From positions 1 to 64,000 of IMG/VR virus record IMGVR_UViG_3300027996_002186: a DNA stretch of 64,000 bases. One strand, given 5' to 3'. Below, in pieces: positions 12,150-51,142 of this stretch. Every line of letters begins with the position of its first letter. The first letter of the stretch is position 1. Under the pieces are notes generated by a model. The model searched no databases, was not told where the DNA came from, and was given only the letters and a program-made list of their open reading frames with translations. The translations under genes were made by a program, and so were the position numbers.

Positions 12150-12704
12150 ATGAAACACCTTATAAGATATAATGAGTCTGATGAGTCTGATGATAATAAA
12201 TTAGATATTAAGTATATAGAATCTTGCTTTGCTGAATTAATAGATAATTATATTGATTATAATAATGGTTATTTAGGAAGAAATAGTTGGACGAAAAATC
12301 CTATTACTAGTAGTTTAGAATATGGTGCTGAGGATTATTACAGTAATGAAAGTTGGTCTATTAGGTTATTACTTGAAGGAACACCAACAAATATGTCTGA
12401 TGATCTATCCGATGGTAGTATAAAAACATCAGGGGTTCATAGATCATCATATAGAATTGGATATAAGTTAGGTAAGTTAGTCAAGGACGCAAATGAAAAA
12501 CTTGAGATATTAAAGGAAATTGAAGTGGGTGTTAAACGAATTAAGGAAAAATACCCATCATATAATATAGATTTCAATAAACAATTTACACATAGTAAGG
12601 ATACACAAACCACGATACAAGAATTTATAGTTGTTGGTATTAGTCAACCACATTCAGATCGTTTACGACAGGTTAAATATAACTGGAAAGACGCGAATAT
12701 TTAA
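12150..12704 (+). CDS. N-terminal-motif protein, paralog family
   Basis: MKHLIRYNES; YIESCFAELIDN. Confidence 0.8.
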   Translation: MKHLIRYNESDESDDNKLDIKYIESCFAELIDNYIDYNNGYLGRNSWTKNPITSSLEYGAEDYYSNESWSIRLLLEGTPTNMSDDLSDGSIKTSGVHRSSYRIGYKLGKLVKDANEKLEILKEIEVGVKRIKEKYPSYNIDFNKQFTHSKDTQTTIQEFIVVGISQPHSDRLRQVKYNWKDANI

Positions 12705-13054
12705 AAGATAATTGTATTAATTTTATATCCTCTTTCAAACATTTTATAAGCTCTCAGAAAATCTTCTTGTTTCGTAAATAAGCTTATTAAATAGTTTTCA
12801 AATTCTACACCAGTGTAACCATCCATGAGCGAGTTTCTAATTCCTCCTACCTTTATAACAATACCTTCATAATCAAAGACAGAATGATCAGTGTCTATAT
12901 CAATACTAAAATTACTCAAAAGGAATCCTATGTGTTTCGCTTTTTCTAAGTATTCTAATCCGATTTTATCATCATAATCACCACACATTATATCATTGAG
13001 GTTTTCACTTAAACCTCCAAAAGTTTTAAATGGTGTTTTATCCAAATGTTTCAT
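12701..13054 (-). CDS. hypothetical protein with C-terminal tag
   Basis: Ends ERGYKINTIIF; TATATTTG box at 13147-13154(-). Confidence 0.7.
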   Translation of the reverse strand: MKHLDKTPFKTFGGLSENLNDIMCGDYDDKIGLEYLEKAKHIGFLLSNFSIDIDTDHSVFDYEGIVIKVGGIRNSLMDGYTGVEFENYLISLFTKQEDFLRAYKMFERGYKINTIIF

Positions 13055-13178
13055 TTAATAAATTTACTGTGTATAATATAATCGACATACACATCAACCA
13101 TATTAAAAACTTGTTAATATTTTCTTTATACTTTTTATACATATCACAAATATAAGGATTATTATTAATATATAACAT

Positions 13179-13610
13179 ATGAAACATCTCAAAAGAATAA
13201 ATGAGTTATATCTAACATCAGATGTGTCTAGTGTTATAGATGATATATTATTGGAGATTAATGATATACCTAAGTTTGTTGGTCTTAATTGGAATCATAC
13301 GGATCGTTTGGGTCGGGCATCTGAACATAGTTTTTTGGTTATTATTAAGTTGAGTGAGGGTATAGAAGATGGTATGGATTATGGTGTTGGTTTAGATGAG
13401 GAAATAACAGAAACTATTAAAAGGTTATTAGAATTTATGACAAGCAATCGATATGAATACTTGATGGAATTTGGAACAGATAACATACCACCTGGTACTT
13501 CAAAAAAAGAATTAAGTGATTATATTAGGAAGTTTGAATATAGTGAATTATCTGATAATGATTTAACTATGTGGGTGGATGAATTTATAAGAATAACTTT
13601 TACAAAATGA
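13179..13610 (+). CDS. N-terminal-motif protein, paralog family
   Basis: MKHLKRINE; VIDDILLEIND...TIKRLLEFM. Confidence 0.8.
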   Translation: MKHLKRINELYLTSDVSSVIDDILLEINDIPKFVGLNWNHTDRLGRASEHSFLVIIKLSEGIEDGMDYGVGLDEEITETIKRLLEFMTSNRYEYLMEFGTDNIPPGTSKKELSDYIRKFEYSELSDNDLTMWVDEFIRITFTK

Positions 13611-14026
13611 GATACATGAAAACATATGAATCATTTGGGAATCCCTTTGGTAACAGTCCGAGGGATAGACGAATCAAGTTGTACAGTTTCCCCAGGGCAA
13701 CACTTTTACTTGAAATCGAGGATATTCTAAGAGAGTTAGAGGATAATAATATACGTGTTGAGGTATATTTTTGGGATGGTGTTGAGGTTTTCTTAACCAG
13801 TAGAAACGAACATGAAGTTAGAAGAGGCTTACTAGCTCCTGATACATTCCCATATGAGGTTATAAAACCTAATATAGAGCATCTAGTTTCTTTCTTAGAA
13901 GAAATTGGATATAAAATTAAAAGTATTCATAATATTGTTAATCTTGAATCAAGAGGATCAATAACTCAATATCCTGATTTGGATGGTGAAGAAATAGGTA
14001 GATTGGAATTTAGATTTATCAAATAA
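13607..14026 (+). CDS. N-terminal-motif protein, paralog family
   Basis: MRYMKTYES; EIEDILRELEDNN...IEHLVSFLEEIGY. Confidence 0.8.
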   Translation: MRYMKTYESFGNPFGNSPRDRRIKLYSFPRATLLLEIEDILRELEDNNIRVEVYFWDGVEVFLTSRNEHEVRRGLLAPDTFPYEVIKPNIEHLVSFLEEIGYKIKSIHNIVNLESRGSITQYPDLDGEEIGRLEFRFIK

Positions 14027-14207
14027 TTAATTACTTTATAAACAATACAACATTTAATTTTTAGTTCCATTTTTCTAATTCATATTCCTTTAAGGTTATC
14101 CAAATACCAAGTATTCTATGTTGTAAAGCTCTAGTAGTAACTAAACAAGTTGCCTTGCGGTTTCGGATAGTAAAAATATTTTTAGTTTTTATTCTATACA
14201 TAGTTAA

Positions 14208-14567
14208 TTATTTTAAAATACTATTGATTTTTTCATCACGAATCTCTAATAGTAGTTGATCTTTATCAAACTCAGGGTAAGCAAATTCACCGACACATAC
14301 TTGTGTGTGTCCATCTTTGACATAGAGTTCCCAAGCATCTCCAATACCTTGTCCAATACCAGATATCTTAAAAATATTATCTGGTTTGGTTTTAGAAAAT
14401 TTAATTATATCTTCTTCGTATGAATACCACTCACACCATGAATCTGCGTCTGAATCACCATATCTATCAAAGGCGTATTTAGCACTATCAGAAAAATTTC
14501 TAAATTTATTAATTAACTTATTACTACCCTCCACAATAGTAAATTGATACTTTGTTAAATATGACAT
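14208..14567 (-). CDS. phage hypothetical protein with C-terminal tag
   Basis: Start MSYLTKY; ends IRDEKINSILK. Confidence 0.75.
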   Translation of the reverse strand: MSYLTKYQFTIVEGSNKLINKFRNFSDSAKYAFDRYGDSDADSWCEWYSYEEDIIKFSKTKPDNIFKISGIGQGIGDAWELYVKDGHTQVCVGEFAYPEFDKDQLLLEIRDEKINSILK

Positions 14568-14624
14568 TAAACCAAATCTTTTATATCTTTGAATAAAAAT
14601 AATAATCACCCCTCGATAATATCA

Positions 14625-14828
14625 TTAAACTTTATATTTTTCAAGGTAAGTATCAAATGTTTTATCACATAAATCATTTCTAAAACCTTTAATAATAGTC
14701 TTATAGAAATATCCCGTATGTCTTTTAGCATACAAGTCAATAACATTACTAGCGTTACCGCAATCATTCATAGTTTCACAACCAGAAATAATTTCAGTTA
14801 CTTTATCAATTTCAAAATCTGTGTTCAT
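14625..14828 (-). CDS. hypothetical protein
   Basis: ORF downstream of TACATTTG box at 14864-14871(-). Confidence 0.65.
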   Translation of the reverse strand: MNTDFEIDKVTEIISGCETMNDCGNASNVIDLYAKRHTGYFYKTIIKGFRNDLCDKTFDTYLEKYKV

Positions 14829-14909
14829 AGTTTATATTTTTTAATTATTACTTTATTTATATACAAATGTAAGGATATTATCATACTAATACAAATTAAT
14901 ATATACTTT

Positions 14910-15050
14910 ATGGAAGGAATGAGGAAAATTATTATGTTTAGTCTTGTAATGATAGTGTTAAGTTCTTGTGGAGTACTCAAGGGTGGTAAAGGTAAATGTG
15001 AGTGTGAGGACTGGGGTCGAAGAGAGTCTGAAAAGACTGATAGTGTATGA
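14910..15050 (+). CDS. small lipoprotein
   Basis: MRKIIMFSLVMIVLSS-C lipobox; TTAATATATA at 14896-14905. Confidence 0.6.
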   Translation: MEGMRKIIMFSLVMIVLSSCGVLKGGKGKCECEDWGRRESEKTDSV

Positions 15051-15436
15051 AATACCTAAAAAAATTCAATGATATAAGATTCGAAATAGAAGAATCTGAT
15101 TCAACTAAAATACGTATGTATGATGTTGATGAAAAAGTTGGTTATTCATCAGTAACTATAAAGGATAATATTTTTGATAAATGGAATTTACATGATGATT
15201 TAGAAGTTGATCCGATAAAAAATACTAAAAGCTTATACATTCTAGGAATATCAATGAGGAATAGGAGAACAGGTTATGGTTCTAATTTAATAAACTATAT
15301 TGAGGAATATGCTAATAAGAAAGGATGTGAATACATCACACTAAGTTCTATTACCGATGCTTTGGGGTTCTGGAAAAAAATGGGATATGAAGTTTATAGT
15401 ATGGGTGATTACTATTCAATGTATAAGAAGTTATAA
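15047..15436 (+). CDS. GNAT N-acetyltransferase with N-terminal motif
   Basis: RRTGYGSNLI acetyl-CoA motif A and ALGFWKKMGY motif B; starts MKYLKKFND. Confidence 0.85.
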   Translation: MKYLKKFNDIRFEIEESDSTKIRMYDVDEKVGYSSVTIKDNIFDKWNLHDDLEVDPIKNTKSLYILGISMRNRRTGYGSNLINYIEEYANKKGCEYITLSSITDALGFWKKMGYEVYSMGDYYSMYKKL

Positions 15437-15465
15437 ACCTTATTGATATTGCTTATATAATGTTT

Positions 15466-15783
15466 ATGGATTTAGTAGAAATAAGATATGTTGGTGATAA
15501 GAGTTGGTCAGTTGTAACTCGATTCTTAGCAACAGGGATGTCTGGGATTGAAATGAGAGAGATTGATAAAAATGGACCTAAATTAACTCTAATCAACAAT
15601 CTAAATAAAGAATTTATCAAAGAGCGTACTTGTAATTGGGAGAAGGAGGATTATGAATACACAACACCATGTGGTGTTAATTTCGATTGTGATAAAGTTA
15701 CTAAAATTAACGATAATAACCTTGGTTATGTCCTCCACTACTGTCCAAATTGTGGTGGTAAGTTAGATTTAAATCTAATTTAA
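15466..15783 (+). CDS. zinc-ribbon protein
   Basis: TPCG...YCPNCGGKL. Confidence 0.7.
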   Translation: MDLVEIRYVGDKSWSVVTRFLATGMSGIEMREIDKNGPKLTLINNLNKEFIKERTCNWEKEDYEYTTPCGVNFDCDKVTKINDNNLGYVLHYCPNCGGKLDLNLI

Positions 15784-15792
15784 ATCTATTGG

Positions 15793-16260
15793 TTAACTTT
15801 TACCTATTCTCCATGCGTTTTTAACAACTCTTTTAATTTTAGTAGAATCTTCATAGTTACCAATTACGACACCATCTTTGATAGTGAATGCGTGTGATGT
15901 AACTTGTAGTATGTAAGTACCTTTATCATATTCTTTTATGAAAGTACCAACAGTCATTTTACTCTTACCATTGTTAGTTTTTAAGTGGTTTTTATTAATG
16001 GTATTTACCGTTTTTCGATTTAATCTAAGGTTATCATTATTCATACCATTCATACCTGGTGCGAATCCATATGTTCCTTTTTTATTTTTACGGCTGAATT
16101 TATTACAGACCCATTTATGTGATTTATCGTATGTCATACCAGATGCGGATGCAATGGCTCTAACAACACAGTCATTATTTTCTTTTTTAGCAATAACCGA
16201 ATCTCTGTATCCGTTAATCGCGGCTGATGAAGATGTATAAGGAATTTTTTTTGTTTTCAT
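15793..16260 (-). CDS. phage protein with DCxxRA...H motif (possible papain-like fold)
   Basis: NDCVVRAIA...GTYILQVTSHAFTIKDG. Confidence 0.6.
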   Translation of the reverse strand: MKTKKIPYTSSSAAINGYRDSVIAKKENNDCVVRAIASASGMTYDKSHKWVCNKFSRKNKKGTYGFAPGMNGMNNDNLRLNRKTVNTINKNHLKTNNGKSKMTVGTFIKEYDKGTYILQVTSHAFTIKDGVVIGNYEDSTKIKRVVKNAWRIGKS

Positions 16261-16313
16261 AGTAGTGATTTTTATTTCTACTAAGATACGGAATTTATAT
16301 CAATTAAAAAAAT

Positions 16314-18854: not shown

Positions 18855-19289
18855 TTAAAGTTTACGATATTTTAATATTATATCTATATGTGATGTTTCC
18901 ATATCTTTGATATGTTTTAATTTGGAATATGAATGTTTTTTATTCATACGAGAGTCATCTATATGATTAAATTCTCTATATGTTAACTTCCAAAGTTCTA
19001 ACCCATATTCTTTCTGTAAGAGTGGTAATGCGAAGTTAAGAACTCCCATAACATCATAGACTTTAAATCTACTAAAACTTGGTAAGGTATATCTTTCTAC
19101 AATCTTATCGATTTCTATTTTAACGTGTGGTGTCAATTCCATATTCATTTTAACTTCAACAGTAAACCCCAAATCACTTAATTCGATTAGAGATTCCTCC
19201 ACAACATATTTTAAATCTGTTGAAGTATCCTTCTTTTTCTTAAAGAAAGAAAAGTTATTAAATAATTCATATGTTTTGATATACTCCAT
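18855..19289 (-). CDS. N-terminal-motif protein, paralog family
   Basis: MEYIKTYELFNN; VVEESLIELSDLGFTVEV. Confidence 0.8.
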   Translation of the reverse strand: MEYIKTYELFNNFSFFKKKKDTSTDLKYVVEESLIELSDLGFTVEVKMNMELTPHVKIEIDKIVERYTLPSFSRFKVYDVMGVLNFALPLLQKEYGLELWKLTYREFNHIDDSRMNKKHSYSKLKHIKDMETSHIDIILKYRKL

Positions 19290-20042: not shown

Positions 20043-20489
20043 ATGAAATACTTGAGAACTTATAAAATATTTGAGTCTGTTGATTTGGTTGAGTTGGAAT
20101 CAACCGTGGATGATATATCTTTAGAGATAAAGGATTTGGGCTATGAAGTAATGATTTATATGCTAAGGAACTTCGTTAGTGTTGAAGTAATATCAAAAAG
20201 GTCAGAAAATCTTTATTCTAAATGGACGCAAGATAGGGAGAATTTTTCAAAGAAGGAATATAATAAGTGTTCTGAGGTTTTGGATAGATTGGAAGATTTT
20301 TTGAAATCGGAAGGTATGTTAATTTATTCAAAGAACTTAATTCGGGTATCACAAGTTAATTACTCAAATTATTCACAATTCGAACATGGTGTATGTGATC
20401 AAGGGTATGATAGCACAGGTACTTGGGAATATAACGTGATGTATCATCTTCCACCTCCAAAACCTTTATATCCAAGAAAAATAAAGTAA
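20043..20489 (+). CDS. N-terminal-motif protein, paralog family
   Basis: MKYLRTYKIFES; VDDISLEIKDLGYEV...LDRLEDFLKSEG. Confidence 0.8.
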   Translation: MKYLRTYKIFESVDLVELESTVDDISLEIKDLGYEVMIYMLRNFVSVEVISKRSENLYSKWTQDRENFSKKEYNKCSEVLDRLEDFLKSEGMLIYSKNLIRVSQVNYSNYSQFEHGVCDQGYDSTGTWEYNVMYHLPPPKPLYPRKIK

Positions 20490-24985: not shown

Positions 24986-25372
24986 ATGAAATATTTAAAG
25001 AAATTTTTCGAAGACCTTGAGGAAGCTCAAGAAGAAGTAGTACAGGCACAGAGTGAAGGTGATATGGATGCTTGTATTGAGGCTTGTAATAAATGTGCTG
25101 AGATATGTAAAAGGTGTGCTGATGAGTGTGCTAAGAATGATAATGAAGAGTGTGCTAAGAATTGTACAGAATGTGCTTTATTATGTGAATTATGTGCTAC
25201 AGCTTGTGAGAGTGGATCAACTAGATCTAAAGATATCTGTGAGTTGTGTGTAGATTGTTGTAAAGACTGTGTTGAGTCATGTGATGATTGTGGTTCAGAA
25301 ACTTGTACAGAATGTTCAGCGGCTTGTAATGTTTGTATAGAAGAGTGTATGATGTGTCTTGAGTCCATGTAA
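24986..25372 (+). CDS. Cys-rich four-helix-bundle Cu-storage-like protein (Csp/DUF326) with N-terminal motif
   Basis: Regular CxxxC/CxxC helices (CIEACNKCAEICKRCADEC...); starts MKYLKKFFE. Confidence 0.75.
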   Translation: MKYLKKFFEDLEEAQEEVVQAQSEGDMDACIEACNKCAEICKRCADECAKNDNEECAKNCTECALLCELCATACESGSTRSKDICELCVDCCKDCVESCDDCGSETCTECSAACNVCIEECMMCLESM

Positions 25373-27948: not shown

Positions 27949-29415
27949 ATGAAATCTTACACAGAGTTTCTTTTAGAAAAAAAGGAAAATGATTTATTGG
28001 AATTACTCAATGAGGCTGTATTTATTATGGCACCGGAAATGAGTGATATAATAGATGAGTTATATAATAGTGAAGAGGGTTATTCTAAAATAGCTAAATG
28101 TTTCTATATGTTAGATATGGAAGACATAGACACTCAGATAAGTTATCTAAACTTAGGAGATGATAATTCAACTATAACATTCCTAAAACCAGAAAAAGTT
28201 GATAAGATAAGAAAGGAAAAAGAATGGACAATAAATGATGTGTGGGTAAATGTCAAAGGTAATGGTATTAGAGTTGGGAGGTTAACTAGAAAGGTTATCG
28301 AACTTTATAATAAATCAAGAAGTGTAAAAACCACTAAAGCGACTAATTCTTCCATAAGTGATGTTAAATTTACAGATCAAGAAATCGAGAAGTTTGTAAA
28401 TGCTTACAAATCTCAATATGATTTTAATAATAATATAATGGATAATTTTAGTTTAGTATCAAGTGAAGATGATATTAAAGAAGCTTATTTAGAAGATAAT
28501 TATTATAGTGGTGATGGTACACTTGGTGGTTCTTGTATGAGAAACGATGATGCTCAAAATTACCTTGAATTATATCATAATACATCAGTAAATCTATTGG
28601 TATTGAAATCAGCAAATAATAAAATTATGGGAAGATCTGTTATATGGACCCTAAGTGATGGTAGGAAATTTATGGATAGAACTTACACGAATAGAGATTC
28701 TGATGTTGATTTGTTTATAAAATATGCTCAAGAGAATAGATATATTTATAAAGCGGAACAAGACTCACGAGCCCACACTTATTTTTATGAACCTGGTGAT
28801 AATTATAACAACAGCTCATTTATACAATTGGAATCAAAAGTTTATGAATTTAGTATTGGTAATAATGGGGGCGAGGAATTTCCTTATATGGACACAATGA
28901 AATATCTTTACTGGGAAGAAGGTATTATACGCAATTATAAAGATAAATCAAATTATTATATCAAATTGGAAGATGTTGATGGTTGGTGTGATTGTGCTGA
29001 ATGTGATGGCGAAGGTAGAGAAGAATGTAATAAGTGTGATGGTGATGGTAACAATACATGTGAAGATTGTCGTGGGTATGGGTATGAGGAATGTAGTAGA
29101 TGTAATGGATATGGTGATAATATGTGTAAAGAATGTGATGGTGATGAGGAAGTTGAGTGTGAAGAATGTGATGGTGAAGGTTATATAGATGGGGAAACGT
29201 GTGGTACTTGTGGTGGATCCAGTAAGGTTACTTGTGTTACTTGTGATGGATATGGTACAGAAAATTGTTCAAATTGTGATGGTGATGGTAGAGAAGAATG
29301 TGGTGAGTGTAATAACAACGGAACAATTGAATGTGAGACTTGTGATGGTGATGGTGAAGGTGAATGTAGTAGATGTGGGGGATATTCTCATAGAGATTTT
29401 TTTGTTAGTAATTGA
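27949..29415 (+). CDS. N-terminal-motif protein with 12 DnaJ-type CxxCxGxG repeats
   Basis: MKSYTEFLLE; LGGSCM..GRSVIW..FMDRTYT core; paralog of 38632..40113. Confidence 0.85.
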   Translation: MKSYTEFLLEKKENDLLELLNEAVFIMAPEMSDIIDELYNSEEGYSKIAKCFYMLDMEDIDTQISYLNLGDDNSTITFLKPEKVDKIRKEKEWTINDVWVNVKGNGIRVGRLTRKVIELYNKSRSVKTTKATNSSISDVKFTDQEIEKFVNAYKSQYDFNNNIMDNFSLVSSEDDIKEAYLEDNYYSGDGTLGGSCMRNDDAQNYLELYHNTSVNLLVLKSANNKIMGRSVIWTLSDGRKFMDRTYTNRDSDVDLFIKYAQENRYIYKAEQDSRAHTYFYEPGDNYNNSSFIQLESKVYEFSIGNNGGEEFPYMDTMKYLYWEEGIIRNYKDKSNYYIKLEDVDGWCDCAECDGEGREECNKCDGDGNNTCEDCRGYGYEECSRCNGYGDNMCKECDGDEEVECEECDGEGYIDGETCGTCGGSSKVTCVTCDGYGTENCSNCDGDGREECGECNNNGTIECETCDGDGEGECSRCGGYSHRDFFVSN

Positions 29416-32201: not shown

Positions 32202-32597
32202 ATGAAAACTTTAAATAAATTAAAATTATACGAGGAGTTTGTGGAAGAACCAACTATTAATCATTCATATATAAAGGCTAAGATGAAAGAATTATCTGAG
32301 TTAGTAAACTATACCTTAAAAAGTGATTTTGATAAAGGCGCTCATTTTGAATATGGTATAACAGAAGATGATGTAGAAATTACATTGGTGTATAGAAATC
32401 ACGAAATAGAGAATTCTATAACATTACAGATACTTTTTAACCTAGACTCATTGATATTAGGATTCTATATGGGAGGTCCTGTTGACTATGAGGGCCACGA
32501 AGAACACTTTAGGGTGTCTTCAATAGAAGAAGGTATGGAATGTATAGAAAAGAAAATTTACGACGCTATAGGTGTCTCTGAGAAGAAAGAAATATGA
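32202..32597 (+). CDS. N-terminal-motif protein
   Basis: MKTLNKLKLYEEFVEE. Confidence 0.8.
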   Translation: MKTLNKLKLYEEFVEEPTINHSYIKAKMKELSELVNYTLKSDFDKGAHFEYGITEDDVEITLVYRNHEIENSITLQILFNLDSLILGFYMGGPVDYEGHEEHFRVSSIEEGMECIEKKIYDAIGVSEKKEI

Positions 32598-33475
32598 AAC
32601 ACTTAACAACACATAACGAAGGTTTATTCAATTGGAGAAGAAATAGGGGTAAGGAACCTTTACATAGAGGATTCTCTAAAGATGATATGTACATATCCAG
32701 TGGTATTGGATATAAGAAAAGGATTGGTACATCACAATTAAAGGATTCTAATACTTTTTACTCTATCCGTTTTCCTGATATGTCTTTAAATATGATAAAA
32801 CAACACATAGTTTCTAAGAGAGATATTCATTCTAAAGGTATATTTGGTGACTTTGGTAGTTATAGAACAGACGGGCCTCGATATAGAGAAAAGAGTTGGG
32901 TTAAGAGCACATCTGTTTGGTATGATTGTGGGAATATATTTAACTCTCTTAGAAATATATCAGATCAATGTGGGTATAGTTTGAATCAGTCTGTTCATGT
33001 TACATCTACACAAAAAGATACTAAGATAGTAGAAATAGTAAACTTTTCTTTTTATAAATTAACTGGTATTTTATCAGATGGTATTGATGAATGTTTAACA
33101 CTTTTATATAAGGTTGAAGAAGATGATAATTATTATCAGATAGGTCAGATAGAAAAAATAGAAGATAGTCCAGAAAGAAATATAGTGGATGAGGTTATAG
33201 AGGAAAATTTCTTGGAACTTATGGATGATGGTTTAATTACCTTTAAATCAGAGGAAATAAAAATAAAGGGTGTTGTTAATTATAAATGTTATGTTAAAGT
33301 ATCAAAAGATATGACACCACAAGTTCTATTTAAGATATCAGAATGTTTATTAGTTGCTGCTCAAAGGTTGAATGATATTAACATTGATATTGATATAAAG
33401 TCTATGCAACATTCAGAAGATAGAAATACAAGAACTGGTACAACTGATATTGAGTTTACTGCTATTCAAAGATAA
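32594..33475 (+). CDS. N-terminal-motif protein, paralog-family domain at C-terminus
   Basis: MKHLTTHNEG; VIEENFLELMDDG. Confidence 0.8.
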   Translation: MKHLTTHNEGLFNWRRNRGKEPLHRGFSKDDMYISSGIGYKKRIGTSQLKDSNTFYSIRFPDMSLNMIKQHIVSKRDIHSKGIFGDFGSYRTDGPRYREKSWVKSTSVWYDCGNIFNSLRNISDQCGYSLNQSVHVTSTQKDTKIVEIVNFSFYKLTGILSDGIDECLTLLYKVEEDDNYYQIGQIEKIEDSPERNIVDEVIEENFLELMDDGLITFKSEEIKIKGVVNYKCYVKVSKDMTPQVLFKISECLLVAAQRLNDINIDIDIKSMQHSEDRNTRTGTTDIEFTAIQR

Positions 33476-34007
33476 ATCCTAAATCTCTTAGTCTATCACC
33501 GTGGTCAAAAGCAAATCCATTTTTATTCATTTGATTTAATTCTTCAATCGAAAACCATCTAGCTGATTGAGCATCATCCATACCGATTATATTGTTACCC
33601 ATATCTCCAGGAATCTCAACAGTAAACGAATGAGCTTCTACCCATGATGTATCACTATTTCTAGGATCTCTATTCTTATCATCAAAAACTCCTAATAGTT
33701 TGAATTTAGAATCTTCTATTTCCGATAGGTCTAATCCCGTCTCTTCTAGAATTTCTCTTTTACCAGCTTGTAACTCAGTCTCTAACCCAGGTTCCCATTC
33801 ATTACCCCGATTAGCAGTAGTATCAACAAAACCACCAGGAATACTCCATTTATTTGGTTCTGCCTTAACAGACTCACCTCTTTGTATTAATAATACTTGT
33901 TGTGTACCATCAACTGTTCTAGTTACGATAGTATCAGCGGTTGGGTTTGGACCAACATATCTTAATGATGGCTTGTCGAATGACTCAAATGTTTTTACAA
34001 ATTTCAT
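33462..34007 (-). CDS. NUDIX hydrolase (ADP-ribose pyrophosphatase/NadM-NrtR-like) with N-terminal motif
   Basis: VLLIQR, WSIPGGFVD, AGKREILEETGL, RDPR, GMDDA..ARW, AFDH; starts MKFVKTFES. Confidence 0.92.
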   Translation of the reverse strand: MKFVKTFESFDKPSLRYVGPNPTADTIVTRTVDGTQQVLLIQRGESVKAEPNKWSIPGGFVDTTANRGNEWEPGLETELQAGKREILEETGLDLSEIEDSKFKLLGVFDDKNRDPRNSDTSWVEAHSFTVEIPGDMGNNIIGMDDAQSARWFSIEELNQMNKNGFAFDHGDRLRDLGFIFE

Positions 34008-34879: not shown

Positions 34880-35893
34880 TTATTTTTCTACTTTTACTCT
34901 AAAGTACAATTCATAAACATCAAAGACTTTAGTAACATCTCTTGAAAATCTTTTTGGTTCAGTAACAATCTTAAATGTTTTTTGTTCTTCATACCAATAA
35001 AATATTGTTATTAATATATTACCATCATTATCAATAATCTTATATCCCCGCTCGGCACTATGTGATTGTATATGTGGTCTAGATGCTTTAACTGGTACTA
35101 ATTTTAATTCATGGCTTTCGATTTTACTGTAAAACTTAGTAACCCAAGTGTTGAATAAAGACATTAGTTGTTCTCTATTATCAGATTTACCACTATCCAT
35201 AGCAGTTTTTATAGCCCATTCCGATGGTAGTAAATCATTATTTAATATTCTTATTTCATTTGGTAAAGTTCTAAGTTGTGCTTTATATTCATAAGTATCA
35301 CCACTTGGTCTTCTCCAAGTAGAATCGAAACTTAATGAATACCCTTCTATTCGAGCACCATCTAGGTCACGGTACCTAACACCTCTGTGGTGATGGTCAT
35401 CCACTATCTGTAAAGATTTTAATATATCTTCTACACCTTCATAATTAATAAAGGAATCACTTTGCTCTCTATCGAAAATTATTCTTATTGTAATATGATT
35501 TATATTTCTAATTGAATAATACACACTGGCTTTACCATCAAGCATTGATTTTATCCTATGTATTGAGTTATAGATAGAGTCTATTATATTTAACTCTGAT
35601 TCGAAATAAACACTCCCATTCCAATTCCTAACATCACCAGATCCACCATCAGATATAGATTTATCATTAATCGTTCTATCAAGTTCTATTTCGATACCTG
35701 GATAATAATCTTTAACATCTCTAGTTCTTCTGTGTGGGTAACCTGTTGATAGTGATATGTAAACAGGATCTATCATATAAGTATATCCCAAATCAACCAT
35801 ATCGATAAATATTTCCTCGATATTATCATCATCAGCATTTATTCTTGATAACAAGTCTTCTTTACTTTCTAATATTTGGGAAAATTTTCTCAC
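34880..35893 (-). CDS. N-terminal-motif protein, paralog family
   Basis: GTG start MRKFSQILES; IEEIFIDMVDLGY. Confidence 0.8.
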   Translation of the reverse strand: MRKFSQILESKEDLLSRINADDDNIEEIFIDMVDLGYTYMIDPVYISLSTGYPHRRTRDVKDYYPGIEIELDRTINDKSISDGGSGDVRNWNGSVYFESELNIIDSIYNSIHRIKSMLDGKASVYYSIRNINHITIRIIFDREQSDSFINYEGVEDILKSLQIVDDHHHRGVRYRDLDGARIEGYSLSFDSTWRRPSGDTYEYKAQLRTLPNEIRILNNDLLPSEWAIKTAMDSGKSDNREQLMSLFNTWVTKFYSKIESHELKLVPVKASRPHIQSHSAERGYKIIDNDGNILITIFYWYEEQKTFKIVTEPKRFSRDVTKVFDVYELYFRVKVEK

Positions 35894-38631: not shown

Positions 38632-40113
38632 TTATTGACAATCATAACAAGGTCGTTCACCTCTCCCACTACAATCAGAACATTCTATGGTTGAATTACC
38701 ATCACATTCAGTACAATCTACTTTACCCCTAGCATCACAATCCTCACAATCTACATCATGTTCTTCACCATCAGATCCTTCTTCTGTTATAGTTCCTCCA
38801 CCATCACAATTTGAACAATTTTCTGTACCATATCCGTCACATTCTGGACAGTCTCTTTCACCACTACCACCACAATCATAACATTCCACTTCGCCTCCAC
38901 CACCACATCCCTCACATCTATAATGTGAGCCTTCAGTATCTTCTAATATATAACAATTACCACATTCATCTATTGATAGTGTACCATTATCTTTATTCCA
39001 ATATTTCAAAGTGTCTAAGTAAGGATATTTTTCATATTCACCTGGTTTTATATCCACGATTATGTTCAAATTTGTATCATCACCATTAGGATCAATACAA
39101 CTACCATTGGCGTTGGATGCGTTTCCACGTTTTGTATACCAACCATTCTCTTTAGCATAATCCTTAAATAATTGAACATCAGAATCATTGGCTGTGTATA
39201 TTCTATCCATAAATCTTTTACCATCTCTCAATTTCCAAAGTAATGCTCTTCCTAAAATTTTATCTGTATCATCATCTGATTTATAAATAACCAAAGTACA
39301 AACTTCTGGATTAGAAATATAGATATCAAAAAATTCCTCATCAACAGCGGACATACAAGAACTACCTAATACGCCCCTCCTTGTCGAGTAATGTGAATAG
39401 TGATACCAATATCCTATTTTATCACCAGTAACTTCTTCAAATAGTGAAAATTTATCATTAAATTTATCAATTGTTGCTTTATATAAATTAACAAATACTT
39501 CAATATCCTTATCAAGGAATTCTATATCATTAGTTTTAAGTAATGCTCTAATAGCTCTACCTACTTTAACTTCTTGTCTATTCGTTGACCAAATTTTATC
39601 CAATCTATCATCAACCTTTCTAATCTTTTCGGCATTTATGACCAATTCTGTACTTGGGAATTTAACATAAACAAATCTCTTACCCGATTCTTCCGAAACT
39701 GTTTCTTTAATAATTTCTCCTAGTTCATCATTTTCTGGTTTTATCAATTCCTCACCAGGTGTGAATCCTAAAGCATCGAAAATAGTTTTATTTTTATATT
39801 CTCCTCCTTCATTTTTATTAAAAGTTAACCAACCACCATTATTACCAACAAATCTAACCTTAATATTTTCCTCACTCAGTATTTGTTGTGCTCTTCTATC
39901 TGGTATAAATGATACTTTATCATTTTTATCCATTACTATATCAAAATAATTAGACCTAACGTCTAAATCTTTATTCTCAACATCTAAAAGTGATTTGGAT
40001 ACTGGGTTCTCTATTTTTGAAAGAGTGAGTCTAAATTTATCAGAATAAACGACATCCGACTCCAATATTAACTCTAATGACTCATTTATGAAATCAAAAT
40101 ACTTTTTTAACAT
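38632..40113 (-). CDS. N-terminal-motif protein with 8 DnaJ-type CxxCxGxG repeats
   Basis: MLKKYFDFINESLELILES; LGSSCM..GRALLW..FMDRIYT core; paralog of 27949..29415. Confidence 0.85.
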   Translation of the reverse strand: MLKKYFDFINESLELILESDVVYSDKFRLTLSKIENPVSKSLLDVENKDLDVRSNYFDIVMDKNDKVSFIPDRRAQQILSEENIKVRFVGNNGGWLTFNKNEGGEYKNKTIFDALGFTPGEELIKPENDELGEIIKETVSEESGKRFVYVKFPSTELVINAEKIRKVDDRLDKIWSTNRQEVKVGRAIRALLKTNDIEFLDKDIEVFVNLYKATIDKFNDKFSLFEEVTGDKIGYWYHYSHYSTRRGVLGSSCMSAVDEEFFDIYISNPEVCTLVIYKSDDDTDKILGRALLWKLRDGKRFMDRIYTANDSDVQLFKDYAKENGWYTKRGNASNANGSCIDPNGDDTNLNIIVDIKPGEYEKYPYLDTLKYWNKDNGTLSIDECGNCYILEDTEGSHYRCEGCGGGGEVECYDCGGSGERDCPECDGYGTENCSNCDGGGTITEEGSDGEEHDVDCEDCDARGKVDCTECDGNSTIECSDCSGRGERPCYDCQ

Positions 40114-41157: not shown

Positions 41158-41412
41158 ATGAGATATCTGAGAACATACAAAAAGTTTACGGAAAATGCTT
41201 ACGTAGCAGCATCCACTGCTGGTTCTGGTAGTGTAGTTGCTGCTCAACCTGGATCCTTACCTGGTACATTCGGAACAGATGGGTCTGGTGATATTGGGTT
41301 TACCTTTAAGAAGGAGAAAAGAAAAAAAGGTGATGTTACCGAGGTTAGTGATTTGAGAGACCTAGAAGAGGTTGAAATTGAGAAGGTTGATGATATAAAA
41401 ATCAAAAATTAA
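41158..41412 (+). CDS. N-terminal-motif protein
   Basis: MRYLRTYKKFTEN; TTAATATATA at 41142-41151. Confidence 0.8.
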   Translation: MRYLRTYKKFTENAYVAASTAGSGSVVAAQPGSLPGTFGTDGSGDIGFTFKKEKRKKGDVTEVSDLRDLEEVEIEKVDDIKIKN

Positions 41413-43965: not shown

Positions 43966-44499
43966 ATGAAACATATAAAAAGATTTGATGAGGTTATTAA
44001 AGTCGATATTAAAGTCGGTGATACTGTCCTTGGTGGTCGATTTAAGAATAAGAAAACCCTTGTTAAGAAAATAGGTAAAAATAAAAAAGGTGATATAACT
44101 ATTAATGATAAGCCTTTGCTTAAATATAGAATCATAAAAGAAGATGTTGATATTAAAGATGTTGTTACTTATTACTTATCACATTTAATAGATGATGGAT
44201 TCGTAGCTTATGATGGAGATGAATTTATAAGAATTTTCAAACCAAAGTATGGTGATGTTTATACTTATACGAATTTAATAGAATTTAATTTTGCTGAAAT
44301 AGCTGGTGATATAATCAGGTTTGTTAATTCAGTGGACGATATTAAAAATATATCATATATGACAATTGCTGAAAAACCAAAAGAGTATAAAATGCAAGGT
44401 GGTGGTGTGTTATTTGATAATTTGGAAAGAAATGTTATTGATATTAATAATTTAGAACAAGTCAATATGGATATGTATTCATTGACTATATTATTTTAA
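43966..44499 (+). CDS. N-terminal-motif protein, paralog-family domain
   Basis: MKHIKRFDE; internal IIKE-D; YLSHLIDDGF. Confidence 0.8.
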   Translation: MKHIKRFDEVIKVDIKVGDTVLGGRFKNKKTLVKKIGKNKKGDITINDKPLLKYRIIKEDVDIKDVVTYYLSHLIDDGFVAYDGDEFIRIFKPKYGDVYTYTNLIEFNFAEIAGDIIRFVNSVDDIKNISYMTIAEKPKEYKMQGGGVLFDNLERNVIDINNLEQVNMDMYSLTILF

Positions 44500-45597: not shown

Positions 45598-45999
45598 TTA
45601 AAAGTTTGTGTGTGCTACACCATCACCGAATGTAACATATTCCTTTTCTTTTTCTTTTGTAAAAGAAAGATATTTATCAATAGGATAATGTTCACGATCT
45701 TCGGTATCTTTTTCGAACCATTCTGATATTTTCATTAAGTCACGTATCCTCTCAATTATATCTTTTAGGTTTGAAGAATCTGGTGTTTCCTTATATTCTT
45801 TCCATTGAATTCTAACAAATATTTGATCACTTTTGGGTAACATCTTACTAACATTTATAGAAAATCCTTCGTCTTCCAATTCCATACAAATATCCTTTAT
45901 CGTTTGTACCAAACAATCTGTTTCTTCGTTATCATATCCCATTCTACAAGGTTTGGAAACGTTTGAGTTAAATTCATTTATAGATTTTAGATATCTCAT
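45598..45999 (-). CDS. N-terminal-motif protein, paralog family
   Basis: MRYLKSINEF; TIKDICMELEDEGF...IIERIRDLM. Confidence 0.8.
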   Translation of the reverse strand: MRYLKSINEFNSNVSKPCRMGYDNEETDCLVQTIKDICMELEDEGFSINVSKMLPKSDQIFVRIQWKEYKETPDSSNLKDIIERIRDLMKISEWFEKDTEDREHYPIDKYLSFTKEKEKEYVTFGDGVAHTNF

Positions 46000-46517
46000 T
46001 TTTCGTAAGGAGCAAATATGTGTTCCCAGGGGATAATATCTTCTGTGTGATACATAGCAATATCAAATCTAATACCATGTTCACCATCACCTTGAAATAC
46101 CGAGGACTCTAAAGAAAAATTAAGTATTTTGAATTTATACCCAAAATCTTTTATTTTAATTAACGAATCAGAAAACTCATTAAAGAATTCAATTGTACTA
46201 GACATTTGTTTATCATTTACATCTCTAATTGATGATGATAAATCATCAAATCTTAATCTAAGTGTATATCCTTTATAAAGAGGTTTATCTATGTAATTTA
46301 TTCTATCTCTAACTTCAAAGTTTTCATCAACTAAAGTATGTGTTGAGTTTTTAATTCCTATAATTTTACCACCTAAATCAACCAATTCTAAGAAAAATTC
46401 TTTTAACTCACCATCTCTATTATATTCAGATCTCATGATAGCTAATTCAAACCAACCATCTCCCTCGCCCGATTCGTTTATCATCTCTACATTATTATAA
46501 TTCTTTAAGTATTTCAT
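45996..46517 (-). CDS. N-terminal-motif protein, paralog family
   Basis: MKYLKNYNNVEMINES; LKEFFLELVDLG. Confidence 0.8.
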   Translation of the reverse strand: MKYLKNYNNVEMINESGEGDGWFELAIMRSEYNRDGELKEFFLELVDLGGKIIGIKNSTHTLVDENFEVRDRINYIDKPLYKGYTLRLRFDDLSSSIRDVNDKQMSSTIEFFNEFSDSLIKIKDFGYKFKILNFSLESSVFQGDGEHGIRFDIAMYHTEDIIPWEHIFAPYEK

Positions 46518-46527
46518 TAACTATATA

Positions 46528-46748: not shown

Positions 46749-46765
46749 GTTGTATATATAAAAAC

Positions 46766-46800
46766 AAAAAAACCCAATCACTTTTGGTGATTGGGTTTTT
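46766..46800. terminator. intrinsic terminator after slyD-like gene
   Basis: AAAAACCCAATCAC-TTTTG-GTGATTGGGTTTTT. Confidence 0.88.
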
Positions 46801-46819
46801 ATATCAATATGTTTGGTTA

Positions 46820-47266: not shown

Positions 47267-47527
47267 AATAATTAATTTATTTTTAAGTTATATTATTAAT
47301 TCTTTTTTTGTTGTTATAATTGGTTAATTAATAACCATTTTTTATATTTAAGTGTGTTACTTAGAAAGTCATCTATTTCATATTCAACTGAATCTGTTGG
47401 TACCTCAATTATTAATATATTATCTTTTATAATCATAATTCTTAAATGTTTGTATATTTATATATTTTTCTTAAATGTTTTTGTTAATTATATATTAAAC
47501 TTTTTGTTATTATTAATTAGAATTAAT

Positions 47528-48217
47528 GTGAGAGAATCTTTCGAAGAATATAAAAAAACAATAGAAACCTTAATTATCAACTTCAAATATCTATATGATG
47601 GTGATGTTAAATCATCTAGTAATAAATCATACTCTGGTAGTATATCACATAAAAACACTTCACCTAGTTTTGTTATAAATTGTATAAATCAAATATACGA
47701 TGAAAGTATTCAATCGATGATCGATAAGTCAATACCAATGAGTATAGGATTAAAAACTGAACCATTGATAGGTAAACCAAGTAATGTGGCTGATAATATA
47801 TTTTATTATATTGATAAATTAAAAACAAACTCATTCAAACCTCTTTATGTTTTTTGTTCATATAATGGAAGAAAATTATTTGGTATAACTAAAGAAATTA
47901 ATAAAAACAAGCCTTTCCCGGGACACTTTTATGATATAGAAAAGTATCATAGTAGATCATATGACTTATATTTATCACCTATACTAATTAATGATAAAGA
48001 AGATGATATTGAGATTTATGTAACTGACAAATCAATACAAAGCTTAGTTTATTCTATACAAAATATGGATTATAAAATTTCAAAAGATGATGAATCATAC
48101 AAACATACAATGTCTTATCATTTTTATGATTGTGACTTTACCTGTTATAAATTGATAATCAAGGATGTATCTAAATGGAGGGATGAGAAAATAAATGAAA
48201 TATTAAATGAGAATTGA
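47528..48217 (+). CDS. hypothetical protein with C-terminal tag
   Basis: Probable GTG start after TAAACT-N16-TAGAAT; ends WRDEKINEILNEN. Confidence 0.75.
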   Translation: MRESFEEYKKTIETLIINFKYLYDGDVKSSSNKSYSGSISHKNTSPSFVINCINQIYDESIQSMIDKSIPMSIGLKTEPLIGKPSNVADNIFYYIDKLKTNSFKPLYVFCSYNGRKLFGITKEINKNKPFPGHFYDIEKYHSRSYDLYLSPILINDKEDDIEIYVTDKSIQSLVYSIQNMDYKISKDDESYKHTMSYHFYDCDFTCYKLIIKDVSKWRDEKINEILNEN

Positions 48218-48614
48218 TTGTGATAGTTTGGATTTTGGATTGGAATGTTATGATCCAAGTTCTTTAGAGGAACGAAATAGATTAAAATCTAGTAAATTAG
48301 TTAAGGATTTATTGAAAATAAATAATAAAATGGAACCTAGAAGAAACTATATGGTTATATCAATGAATGTCTTTAATCTATTAGAGTATCACGATAGATT
48401 TGAACATATAAAATTATCTAGTAAAAAAGAAATAGGCCCATTAACACTTGTTGGTTATATAGGTGGTTTAGATTGTTATGTAGATTTAAATATGAAACAT
48501 AATAACATACTATTACATTACGATAAACAAGTTATTCGTAATCTTAGATTAGAATCTATATTAGATGATAGTAATATTATTGATGATGAGGTTGAAATTG
48601 AAGTGATAATTTAA
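48207..48614 (+). CDS. hypothetical protein
   Basis: Near-terminal IRNLRLESILD tag variant. Confidence 0.75.
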   Translation: MRIDCDSLDFGLECYDPSSLEERNRLKSSKLVKDLLKINNKMEPRRNYMVISMNVFNLLEYHDRFEHIKLSSKKEIGPLTLVGYIGGLDCYVDLNMKHNNILLHYDKQVIRNLRLESILDDSNIIDDEVEIEVII

Positions 48615-48647
48615 CTGGACTAAAAGATTTTTATCTCACCTAACATA

Positions 48648-50648
48648 TTATTTATTATTGTTATTGAATTTCTCAAATTTAGCGATAATCTTTTTATTTG
48701 TATTATCGATAGTCATTAAGCTTTTCCTATCCGTTTTCATTCCTTTTCCAGCACCGGCCCTAATAAATTCTTCTTTTGTTACTGTTGATGGTGTACCATC
48801 GTTATTAACTAATTGATATTCGAAATTTTCATTAGTATCTTGTCCTAATAACTTAACACCTTTGGTATCATAATCAACATCCTCTCCAGATCTAGCAGTA
48901 TCTATCTTTTCTTTAAGAGCATTTACAAAATCTCTAGCTATCTTCTTTAATACATCAACATATTTATCTGTATCATAAGCTATTTTCATCATAGCTTTAT
49001 TATATTTTAATAGATTAAGACCAGCGATATTTGTAATTGATGGGTGACCTCCACTATTTCTTATTACAATTTCCCATACTGGAATTTTGAGATTATTTAA
49101 TAGTGTTTTTTGTTCGTAAGATAAATCTTTATGTAAAACATTCATAGCTTCTTCTAATCCATCTTCTTTAATATCAACATTAAGAATAGTTCTACCCTCT
49201 TTCTTAAATACACAATCAGAATAAAAAGCTTCTAAATCAGAATATTTAAATCCAACACCTTCGTATGAATCACCTTCATCCTTCTTCATTTTTTTCCAAT
49301 CTTGTGAATTTTCAAATTCATTCTTAATTGATTCTAATGATATATAATACTTACTCATCATTGGTTCATACTTAGCTAATACTTCTTTAGAGATTTCTCC
49401 TAAGTTAATATCTTTAAGTATTTTCTCCTTAAATGGATTACAAGAAACTTGTACAAGACCCATTGGCCAAACAATACAGATAAATTCCGCATCCGGGAAA
49501 TTCTTAAATGGTGTATATCTATCATAAGAACCTGGTTTAATCATACTACCACCTCCATATTGCATAAGTATTTTATAATCTTCATCAATATGAATACCCT
49601 TTATAGAACTCTTACCATTGAGAGCTTTTCTTCCTAACCAAGTAACGCTATAAACATTTTTCGGTTTATCTTCAATATAATTTTTATCAAATAATCTATC
49701 AACATACTTAACATACTCTTCGTTAGATATTCCTAGCTTCTTAGCTAATTCAACATCTTGAGAGGCTGGCATTCTGTGTATATTTTTTAGGATGCTTAAT
49801 TCGGTTCTACCAATTTCCATAACATCACCACTTTCACTTTCAACGAATCCGTAATCCTTCATTCTCTCGATATAGTTAGTAAGGTTTGTTTTTATTTCTT
49901 CTGGTGTTGCTAATCTACCAAGCTTATCGCTTGTTTTTGCATTATTAATATAATGTCTAATATTGTTAAACATTGAGTATAAACTCGCAGTTGAGTCTAA
50001 TAATAAACACTCAAGTATATTCTTATTTATGTGATCTCTTTTACCATCTAATGATTTAACAGTTATTCTTTTATTCTTATAAGCTAATAATAATCTATTA
50101 ACCACTAATCCCATCATAAATCTATTCTTTTGTGGTGTTTCTGCCTTTTCATATTTGAATATAGAATTTTGAACATCTTCTGGCTTAATATTATTTCTCA
50201 AGAAATCTGCTGAATCAATTGTTTGAATCATTTTTATATCTTGTGCCGTGAATATATCTGAATATGAAACTTCACCTGATATAATCTCAACATTTGATCT
50301 AGCTGATTTGAAATATGTTGATTCTGTGTCCTCAGCACCAACTTGTTTATCATGATGATCCGATTGTATATGGAACATTGGTTTACCGTGTGCGAAATCA
50401 ACTAAAACTTTTAATGTATCAGGTCTTCCGTTTTTAACAGCATACTCTAATCCACCATATTGAATGATATGACAATCAACTGTTTCTATTTGATAGTAAT
50501 TTTTTAAGAATACACTCATAGCTAATGCTGATGTTACTCCATCTAAATCTTTGTGAAAGTATATCTCACATTCTTTATATCCTTTAGTTATAGCTTTTAT
50601 GTTTCTTAAACCTACTTCCTCGTTTACAAACTCAGTATATTTTTTCAT
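48648..50648 (-). CDS. DHH-family phosphoesterase-like protein with winged-helix insertion and N-terminal motif
   Basis: HKDLDG, VDF, SDHH, DSAD, GGH motifs; ELAKKLGIS...L...NYI...Y.VT.LG wHTH; starts MKKYTEFVNEE. Confidence 0.75.
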   Translation of the reverse strand: MKKYTEFVNEEVGLRNIKAITKGYKECEIYFHKDLDGVTSALAMSVFLKNYYQIETVDCHIIQYGGLEYAVKNGRPDTLKVLVDFAHGKPMFHIQSDHHDKQVGAEDTESTYFKSARSNVEIISGEVSYSDIFTAQDIKMIQTIDSADFLRNNIKPEDVQNSIFKYEKAETPQKNRFMMGLVVNRLLLAYKNKRITVKSLDGKRDHINKNILECLLLDSTASLYSMFNNIRHYINNAKTSDKLGRLATPEEIKTNLTNYIERMKDYGFVESESGDVMEIGRTELSILKNIHRMPASQDVELAKKLGISNEEYVKYVDRLFDKNYIEDKPKNVYSVTWLGRKALNGKSSIKGIHIDEDYKILMQYGGGSMIKPGSYDRYTPFKNFPDAEFICIVWPMGLVQVSCNPFKEKILKDINLGEISKEVLAKYEPMMSKYYISLESIKNEFENSQDWKKMKKDEGDSYEGVGFKYSDLEAFYSDCVFKKEGRTILNVDIKEDGLEEAMNVLHKDLSYEQKTLLNNLKIPVWEIVIRNSGGHPSITNIAGLNLLKYNKAMMKIAYDTDKYVDVLKKIARDFVNALKEKIDTARSGEDVDYDTKGVKLLGQDTNENFEYQLVNNDGTPSTVTKEEFIRAGAGKGMKTDRKSLMTIDNTNKKIIAKFEKFNNNNK

Positions 50649-50698
50649 ATTATTTTTCATATCAGTATAATAATTTTCTTTATTCTTTATATATTAAA

Positions 50699-51142
50699 TT
50701 AGACAACGTATTTTATTTTTATGTCTTCTATTCGATGCATAAATATTTTAAGTTGATATCCCACTACCTTTGACTTCGAAATATACCATCCAAAATCACC
50801 CAATCTATCATTTGTGGTTTCTATTATTTCTTTAAATTCACTAGATTTTATATAATCTTCTAATTCTTCTTTTTGTCTTCCGACATCATTAGCATTCCGT
50901 TGAACCAATTCCTGAAAGACACATCTTATATAAGGTATAGATTCTATAACCATTTTACCATCCTCTTTATCAACTGATGTATCTCTTTGGATAAGATTTT
51001 TATCAAAGTATGTTGATGTATTATATCCAGCATCCGATATATCAACAAACATATCCTCAATGTATTCCTTTGTTAATCCATTATAATGTTCTTCCTTTGG
51101 TACTAACATTTCCCAACCTTCGAATGTCTTTAAATATTTCAT
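50699..51142 (-). CDS. N-terminal-motif protein, paralog family
   Basis: MKYLKTFEG; YIEDMFVDISDAGY. Confidence 0.8.
   Translation of the reverse strand: MKYLKTFEGWEMLVPKEEHYNGLTKEYIEDMFVDISDAGYNTSTYFDKNLIQRDTSVDKEDGKMVIESIPYIRCVFQELVQRNANDVGRQKEELEDYIKSSEFKEIIETTNDRLGDFGWYISKSKVVGYQLKIFMHRIEDIKIKYVV

Follow-up and report, generated by a model that had tools for sequence, protein, structure and literature searches.

The closest described systems come from two kinds of phage head. In bacteriophage T4, the capsid-targeting sequence (CTS) reads MKTYQEFIAE (PMC8442874); positions 4 and 7 are important for targeting, while processing by gp21, at L/I-x-E, relies on positions 8 and 10 (PMC9026906). 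The internal proteins of T4 are a varied set with anti-defence roles, and the CTS is all that they have in common (PMC3012670); they have been described as highly basic (PMC8442874). An enzyme, Alt, is packaged via such a propeptide as well (PMC9026906). Among giant phages, the inner body of phiKZ-like viruses consists of paralogous head proteins, and the head paralog family B of SPN3US comprises 20 members of unknown function (PMC5694885). Here we describe a family of small, N-terminally tagged proteins of an uncultured megaphage that appears to be a variant of both themes, the giant-phage head paralog families and the CTS system of T4. Our starting point was a window of 64,000 nucleotides (bases 1 to 64,000 of the 483,262-bp IMG/VR virus record IMGVR_UViG_3300027996_002186), in which an original prediction had singled out eleven tagged open reading frames (ORFs) as dispersed, fast-diverging paralogs sharing a helix motif and had proposed them to be injected or head-core proteins.

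The record has a G+C content of 29.6% and a CheckV completeness of 98%. We know of no megaphage in culture. For one tail protein encoded in the window and for several small proteins, the best public relative is LR745206.1, a 634,780-bp uncultured phage which has been placed among the largest megaphages as sister to the marine Mar_Mega_1 (PMC9723777). Combining these matches with the published placement, we assign the 483-kb genome to the megaphages of the LR745206 clade. ORFs of the window are named below by their first coordinate; coordinates prefixed G000 refer to the 483-kb genome, most of them outside the window.

Six of the named ORFs belong to one protein family

All eleven ORFs are present in the window and all are N-terminally tagged, ORF 34880 with a variant tag and a GTG start. 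Because the shared tag might otherwise drive the result, we stripped the ORFs of their first 12 residues before profile work. An iterated search of the genome with a hidden Markov model (HMM) built from these stripped sequences reached convergence at 20 domains in 18 proteins; six of these proteins lie in the window, namely ORFs 13179, 13607, 18855, 20043, 45598 and 50699. The family is therefore larger than the roughly eleven members first proposed, while the expansion itself is borne out. Profile and six-frame searches found no further family members in the window beyond the ORFs already named.

For calibration, the family profile was enlarged with 107 metagenomic relatives, each member was scored with its own subfamily excluded, and the scores were compared with those of 7,220 shuffled decoys. 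In this AT-rich proteome, such decoys reach 12 to 17 bits, which makes the E-values of HMMER too optimistic; we therefore quote empirical decoy p-values. The six members scored 19.2 to 42.0 bits in these leave-out runs as compared to 11.6 to 14.7 bits for the best decoy, corresponding to an empirical p < 1.4e-4 for each of them. Profile-profile comparison by HHalign, again with the subfamily in question left out, returned probabilities of 87.8% for the group of 18855 (E 3.4e-6 over 69 columns), 96% for that of 13179 (E 2.8e-9) and 98% for that of the paralog G000 439346-439759. In addition, BLASTP connects 20043 and 45598 with six paralogs elsewhere in the genome, beyond the window.

The six members differ in orientation and in the placement of the helix motif. 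ORFs 13179-13610 (+; 143 amino acids [aa]; leave-out score 28.1 bits, best decoy 12.5) and 13607-14026 (+; 139 aa; 31.4 bits, best decoy 14.1) form a tandem pair in which the start of the latter overlaps the end of the former by 4 bases; their helix motifs occupy aa 17-35 and aa 36-53, respectively. The first of the two opens with the tag MKHLKRINE, and the second was also recovered by a six-frame genome search with profile A5 (E 1.7e-14). ORF 18855-19289 (-; 144 aa) has the lowest score of the six (19.2 bits, best decoy 14.7) and carries the helix motif at aa 30-42 as VEESLIELSDLGF. ORF 20043-20489 (+; 148 aa; 41.3 bits, best decoy 14.7), which starts with the tag MKYLRTYKIFES and has its helix motif at aa 19-38, is linked by BLASTP to the paralog 439346 (E 9e-7). 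The highest score was obtained for ORF 45598-45999 (-; 133 aa; 42.0 bits, best decoy 11.6), with the tag MRYLKSINE and the helix motif at aa 30-50. Lastly, ORF 50699-51142 (-; 147 aa; 27.9 bits, best decoy 13.3) carries the motif at aa 28-40 as IEDMFVDISDAGY. The helix pattern proposed for all eleven ORFs is matched exactly in 18855 and 50699 only; the remaining nine are near-matches. A profile of the helix motif alone found 20 sites of at least 10 bits in the genome, where 0.4 would be expected from shuffled sequence, and ORFs 12150, 32594, 43966 and 45996 are all within its noise. The second motif, predicted to follow about 50 aa later, is real and has the family consensus F-x-R-x-x-D-Y-L-x-S-x-G-[YF].

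A seventh ORF, 34880-35893 (-; 337 aa), has the N-terminus MRKFSQILES and combines a family-like domain at aa ~23-167 with a C-terminal extension of ~170 aa. It scores 11.5 bits with the family HMM (empirical p 8e-4) and 11.6 bits with the motif-only HMM, and HHalign pairs a profile of six orthologs with that of the family across 65 columns (E 6e-4, probability 28%), the elements following each other correctly as a1-b1-b2-a2. In our view, 34880 is probably a remote family member to which a C-terminal half has been added. ORF 45996-46517 (-; 173 aa; tagged), which adjoins 45598 and belongs to a conserved ortholog group of its own, is a weak candidate: its family HMM score is 8.2 bits (empirical p 0.0026), its motif-only score of 3.1 bits is noise, and an 11-sequence profile matches the family over tag and helix only, shrinking to 20 columns at 5.5% probability once the tag is removed.

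ORFs 12150-12704 (+), 32594-33475 (+; 293 aa) and 43966-44499 (+; 177 aa) are tagged as well, yet their membership is not supported: as judged by the profiles, they have nothing measurable in common with the family beyond a helix of ~20 residues. With the family HMM, they score like shuffled sequence (p = 0.64, 0.96 and 0.90, respectively). The helix motif of 32594 lies at aa ~205, and that of 43966 at aa ~65, behind a lysine-rich N-terminal segment. Two-sequence profiles of these two ORFs align with the family over 18 columns (probability 0.4%) and 23 columns (1%) only. Both have orthologs in LR745206.1, which are 65% (32594) and 64% (43966) identical. ORF 12150 belongs to a separate small tagged family with the paralog G000 351132-351548, to which it is tied by BLASTP (E 1.4e-5) as its one such link; an exhaustive search found nine relatives of this pair among 1.8 billion representative proteins. 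The motifs of this small family read DIEYI..CFA.lID and LEIL.EIE..I.RI..KYP.Y, and its profile aligns with that of the main family at an HHalign probability of 0.3% (E 0.18). Its helix-strand-helix layout resembles that of the main family, with which homology is not detectable.

Might all eleven ORFs nevertheless share one fold and origin, with 12150, 32594, 43966 and 45996 having diverged beyond the reach of profiles? Such divergence is known within the family, as the accepted subfamilies of 18855 and 13179 give each other an HHalign probability of just 0.1%. Moreover, the empirical p of 0.0026 for 45996 and of 0.001 for the paralog of 12150 would fit distant membership, and by eye all four ORFs show a helix with D-x-G, then strands and a second h-x-R-h helix (h, hydrophobic) in the same order. 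We nonetheless consider a common fold and origin of all eleven unlikely, given the shuffle-like scores of 12150, 32594 and 43966, ortholog profiles of these three that align over 18 to 23 columns at no more than 1% probability, a helix motif within noise in all four ORFs, and the different architecture of 32594 and 43966, in which the helix lies far from the N-terminus.

The predicted paralogy is thus partly confirmed, with six members certain, one probable, one weak and three unsupported; by these profile tests, the earlier membership list appears to be about 60% right and about four ORFs too long. Elsewhere in the genome, the four tagged ORFs G000 101261-101911, 312150-312656, 382711-383178 and 411650-412378 reach 9.8 to 15.3 bits with the family profile (empirical p 3e-4 to 1e-3). 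They may be extra distant members, in which case the superfamily would comprise about 25 proteins.

A small alpha/beta domain built from two repeats

The family domain spans ~110 to 125 residues, and its bearers are mostly acidic, with a median isoelectric point of 4.75. Since the AlphaFold model of 45598 (mean predicted local distance difference test [pLDDT] score 52; core a1(25-43)-b-b-a2(75-91)) was too poor for searching, we took the family fold from the paralog G000 439346-439759, which lies outside the window. Its model, based on an alignment of 80 sequences, has a pLDDT of 79.5 and a predicted template modelling score (pTM) of 0.75. In this model, helix 1 (residues 4-31), which spans both the tag and the first motif, is followed by two strands, helix 2 (residues 71-86), two further strands, a short helix and a final strand. 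Together with the profile statistics, the model bears out the prediction of an expanded family of small alpha/beta domains.

Combining the profile consensus, the secondary structure of the model and an hmmalign alignment of the members, we placed both motifs on the predicted fold. D-x-G-[YF] caps helix 1 and leads into strand 1; similarly, helix 2 with its F-x-R-x-x-D-Y-L-x-S-x-G-[YF] leads into strand 3. The modelled domain shows two alpha-beta-beta repeats plus a final strand. The first motif would thus be the buried face of helix 1 with its D-x-G-[YF] cap and the second motif helix 2 with its G-[YF] turn, and the two would constitute equivalent parts of the two repeats.

Structure searches with Foldseek against PDB, with VIA-align against ~48,000 PDB representatives, and of BFVD and the ESM Atlas found no specific or functional relative of this fold. 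What the model does share, with circularly permuted ferredoxin-like repeats such as the C-terminal domains of PilO, EpsM/GspM and PulL or permutants of ribosomal protein S6, is the alpha-beta-beta-alpha-beta-beta order in a two-layer sandwich. However, sequence identity to these domains is 7 to 16% and the family model has an additional C-terminal helix and strand, and a functional inference from this resemblance is not justified. As a separate observation, a viral cluster of 555-aa proteins in the ESM Atlas, which combines 2',5'-RNA-ligase/2H, RNase_T and Acb1 domains, the last of these acting against the cyclic-oligonucleotide-based antiphage signalling system (anti-CBASS), contains a region resembling the family domain (template modelling [TM] score 0.52 to 0.53 over 97 to 99 residues). 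This hints, if weakly, at fusions of the domain to enzymes directed against host defence.

The family is virus-only and turns over at uneven rates

A six-frame profile search of this genome returned 26 matches, including ~19 that are nearly complete; the same profile matched LR745206.1 at 41 places, ~28 of them near-full-length copies. The copy-number comparison with a related phage thus reveals a similarly multiplied family. The 107 metagenomic relatives are all unnamed and nearly all tagged, and some lie on contigs of 611 to 635 kb. The nearest clusters in the ESM Atlas are 100% viral. Searches of Pfam and PHROG gave no significant family for any of the ten named ORFs scanned (all but 50699), nor did a rescan of 43966 and 32594. 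As far as these searches reach, the family appears to be new to databases, confined to viruses and previously unnamed. Note that locus searches with a single protein or with alignment A4 returned almost nothing but pieces of this very phage in other samples. IMG samples 3300025770 and 3300023210 are among those in which the phage occurs.

The family had also been described as fast-diverging, which applies to some of its members. No orthologs of 20043 and 45598 were found in LR745206.1, unlike for the tagged proteins 43966 and 32594 outside the family with their 64 to 65% identity, which fits rapid turnover. The paralog 439346, in contrast, has dozens of relatives at 40 to 85% identity in other metagenomes; rates therefore differ among members.

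Architectures vary as well and include single domains, tandem doubles (464977, 466056 and P0015) and fusions to other modules. One such module of ~60 residues (..YNVVK[ND]G..IGQ[IV]KW.SR.RGY.FLP..) stands C-terminal to the family domain in G000 359433-360116, and the same module is N-terminal in the metagenomic relatives P0081, P0097 and P0058, where it lies between tag and domain. Its occurrence on either side points to domain shuffling within the family.

A portable N-terminal tag on 82 proteins

Nearly all family members start with a tag of 8 to 12 residues, M-K-[YH]-[LI]-K-x-[FY]-..-E, variants of which on the named ORFs are MKYLKTY, MKHLKR and MRYLKS. The tag is not restricted to the family: its core, M-K-[YH]-[LI]-K-x-[FY]-[ENK], was detected on 82 of ~603 ORFs (14%), with scores from a position-specific scoring matrix (PSSM) falling into two modes with almost nothing in between. 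Position 2 (K), position 4 (L/I in 78/82) and position 7 (F/Y in 75/82) are the most conserved. A hydrophobic-x-E sequence occurs within residues 6 to 22 of 84% of the tagged ORFs as compared to 39% of the untagged ones. The first 50 kb of the genome hold more than their share of tagged genes (20 of 91 ORFs). A literature search with the tag as a text string found no paper.

Conservation begins exactly at the ATG, and the upstream DNA is no more conserved than at untagged genes, which argues for a peptide signal rather than a regulatory cassette. Besides the family, the tag occurs on entirely different folds. Within the window, these are a T4-type lysozyme (3483-4313), a GNAT acetyltransferase (15047-15436) and a NUDIX hydrolase (33462-34007), and the spread over such folds argues that the tag is a portable module. 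A Cys-rich DUF326 protein (24986-25372) is tagged as well, as are the ORFs starting at 3073, 4634, 24665, 31507, 31704, 36205, 40152 and 41158.

Head genes and copies of the capsid arm

The genome encodes a T4-type capsid protein, G000 137993-139723, which Pfam Gp23 matches at 81.5 bits, above its cut-off. Directly upstream lies G000 135766-137907 (713 residues), residues 4-342 of which match PHROG 207, "head maturation protease", at E 1.6e-30. The remaining tail of ~370 residues is repetitive, acidic and scaffold-like, with tandem copies of NLDKNI[AS]Y[AS]EY[IL]AE that provide eight Y-[LI]-A-E sites, and with one very acidic stretch. A sequence search of PDB with the N-terminus of this protease found nothing. 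A short paralog of the protease ORF was found by BLAST at 132825-133280.

A direct connection between capsid protein and tag comes from ORF 41158-41412 (+). Its sequence "KKFTE|NAYVAAS..GSVVAAQP" aligns residue for residue with "HSINE|NAYANAS..GAVVAAQP" of the capsid protein. The tag would thus end exactly at the presumed end of the capsid propeptide, where a maturation site is expected. Likewise, in G000 436351-436869 the segment following "LILE" aligns with the capsid segment that follows "HSINE".

Small ORFs such as these two copy the arm that the Gp23-like capsid protein has at its N-terminus (..G.G[AS]VV[AS][AS]QP..L.G.T.G..GSGD[IV]), each copy standing right after a hydrophobic-x-E. In 41158, the copy is preceded only by the 12-residue tag. 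ORF 234140-234631 copies the propeptide of the capsid protein instead, up to "HSINE".

Are the tagged proteins packaged and ejected?

The best available explanation for these observations, to which we tentatively assign a probability of about 40%, is that the tagged family proteins are loaded into the capsid and ejected. From the likeness of the tag to the T4 CTS, the presence of the head genes and the hydrophobic-x-Glu sites, we infer that the tag may act as the CTS does, docking each protein onto the scaffold core of the prohead. The head-maturation protease would then clip the tag after the Glu of its hydrophobic-x-Glu site, leaving a mature, small and acidic protein to be retained in the capsid and ejected into the host along with the DNA. 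There, a multiplied repertoire with fast turnover would act on host targets, for instance defence systems, in the manner of the T4 internal protein IPI*. The earlier suggestion of injected or head-core proteins is, in this light, plausible on circumstantial grounds, namely a T4-CTS-like tag, a T4-type capsid protein, a head protease and the hydrophobic-x-E sites.

How far do the precedents reach? As in T4, otherwise unrelated proteins carry a short N-terminal peptide that begins with M-K, is hydrophobic or aromatic at the key positions 4 and 7 and closes with hydrophobic-x-Glu. The genome likewise combines a Gp23-type capsid protein with a head-maturation protease, and the mature parts are diverse in both phages. 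The differences are that the mature parts of the family have neither sequence nor fold similarity to the T4 internal proteins (the PDB searches returned nothing related), that ~82 proteins are tagged here as compared to a handful in T4, and that packaging and cleavage are predictions here. With family B of SPN3US and the pfam12699 inner-body and ejection proteins of phiKZ and SPN3US, the family shares a set of ~20 paralogs whose copy number varies between related phages and, presumably, a link to a head matured by a gp21-like enzyme with cleavage behind Glu (PMC5694885). Homology to these proteins is not detectable, as the family has no Pfam or PHROG hit. Moreover, most propeptides of SPN3US and phiKZ exceed 100 residues, with cleavage at S/A-x-E instead of behind a T4-like tag of 10 to 12 residues, and the SPN3US proteins were seen in the virion by mass spectrometry, whereas our tagged family is known from its genes.

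Several points weigh against packaging. To our knowledge, loading 82 different proteins, or 14% of all ORFs, would far exceed any known case. Many tags have E at position 8 (e.g., K-T-F-E) and lack an L/I three residues before the Glu, so that the L/I-x-E rule of T4 appears to fit only some of them, unless a later site is used. AlphaFold runs the tag into helix 1 as one continuous element, not as a free peptide, with a local pLDDT of ~51. The acidity of most family members also contrasts with the basic nature of the internal proteins of T4. The presumed protease ORF reaches only 19.6 bits with Pfam Peptidase_S77, below the curated cut-off, and the searches for a fold relative provided no hint at function.

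As the main competing reading, the same genes could instead encode ordinary intracellular proteins, such as early host-takeover or regulatory factors, which are never packaged and whose N-terminus serves another role, either as a mark recognised by a chaperone, protease or localisation system of the phage or as a favoured translation-start context in a genome of 30% GC. Small, fast-evolving phage ORFs of unknown function are mostly early and non-structural, and the tagged genes lie interspersed with non-structural ones, with an excess in the first 50 kb. Their NUDIX and GNAT enzymes are not classic virion components, although T4, too, packages an enzyme, Alt, by such a propeptide (PMC9026906). 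The DNA encoding the tag is rich in AAA and AT. Conservation at the amino acid level, however, at positions 3, 4 and 7 and with a bimodal score, would not be expected from a translation context, and the tagged genes have no common upstream DNA element. In addition, the tag ends in the same hydrophobic-x-E context as is seen at the presumed maturation site of the capsid protein and in the scaffold repeats. On balance, we find a purely intracellular role possible but doubtful.

Still within the head, the family might act as accessory proteins of the prohead core or scaffold, comparable to gp67 and gp68 of T4 or to the inner body of phiKZ, helping to build or size the very large capsid before being degraded or retained as structural filling, rather than serving as effectors in the host. 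This would draw on the same targeting logic as packaging for ejection, and both the tandem-domain versions and the paralogous composition of the inner body in phiKZ-like phages (PMC5694885) would suit it. Parts of a scaffold are normally conserved, however, whereas 20043 and 45598 have no ortholog in LR745206.1 despite the ~28 near-full-length matches there, and the genes are dispersed rather than clustered in the head module at 132 to 147 kb. These two properties make a core function improbable.

Should the tag indeed direct targeting and cleavage, the injected proteome of uncultured megaphages would become readable from sequence, and the packaged and ejected set could be predicted throughout the clade, including this phage, LR745206.1 and many metagenomic relatives. 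The ~20-member family would then be the main variable part of the ejected proteome, in which novel activities for anti-defence or host takeover would naturally be sought. In its widest form, the proposal holds that the clade uses a T4-like targeting peptide on ~80 proteins, comprising a ~20-member acidic alpha/beta family under birth-and-death evolution as well as lysozyme, GNAT and NUDIX proteins, and so delivers from its giant capsids a ready-made arsenal of proteins larger and more diverse than that known from any other phage, a claim that we consider rather unlikely as it stands. Function aside, the analysis adds a domain family that is new, restricted to viruses and missing from both Pfam and PHROGs, with a confident model and clear boundaries.

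Other paralogs in the window and the genome

Outside the tagged family, four paralogous ORFs, G000 91769, 93470, 282953 and 284774, were considered as split phiKZ-like RNA polymerase subunits and rejected; no Pfam RNA polymerase domain was found in them, the only match being a sub-threshold DUF2793 in 91769.

A second paralog family comprises nine members of ~360 to 650 aa that are linked by BLASTP. Two are encoded in the window, at 27949-29415 (+) and 38632-40113 (-), and seven elsewhere. The protein encoded at 27949 weakly matches a BSD2/DnaJ-like Cys-rich zinc-finger domain.

Further paralogs are found at both ends of the window. At 4931-6316, 6313-7044 and 7315-8034 (all -) lie three neighbouring paralogs, the largest of which contains a concanavalin/laminin-G-like domain (Laminin_G_3, E 2e-14); these genes look like tail-fibre or receptor-binding paralogs. 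Two large and, by BLASTP, mutually similar ORFs, 55566-57683 (+) and 61780-63960 (-), flank a baseplate-hub gene at 58312-59910 with a Phage_base_V OB domain; a Peptidase_C39-like domain is present in one of the two large proteins, and a phage tail lysozyme domain in its counterpart.

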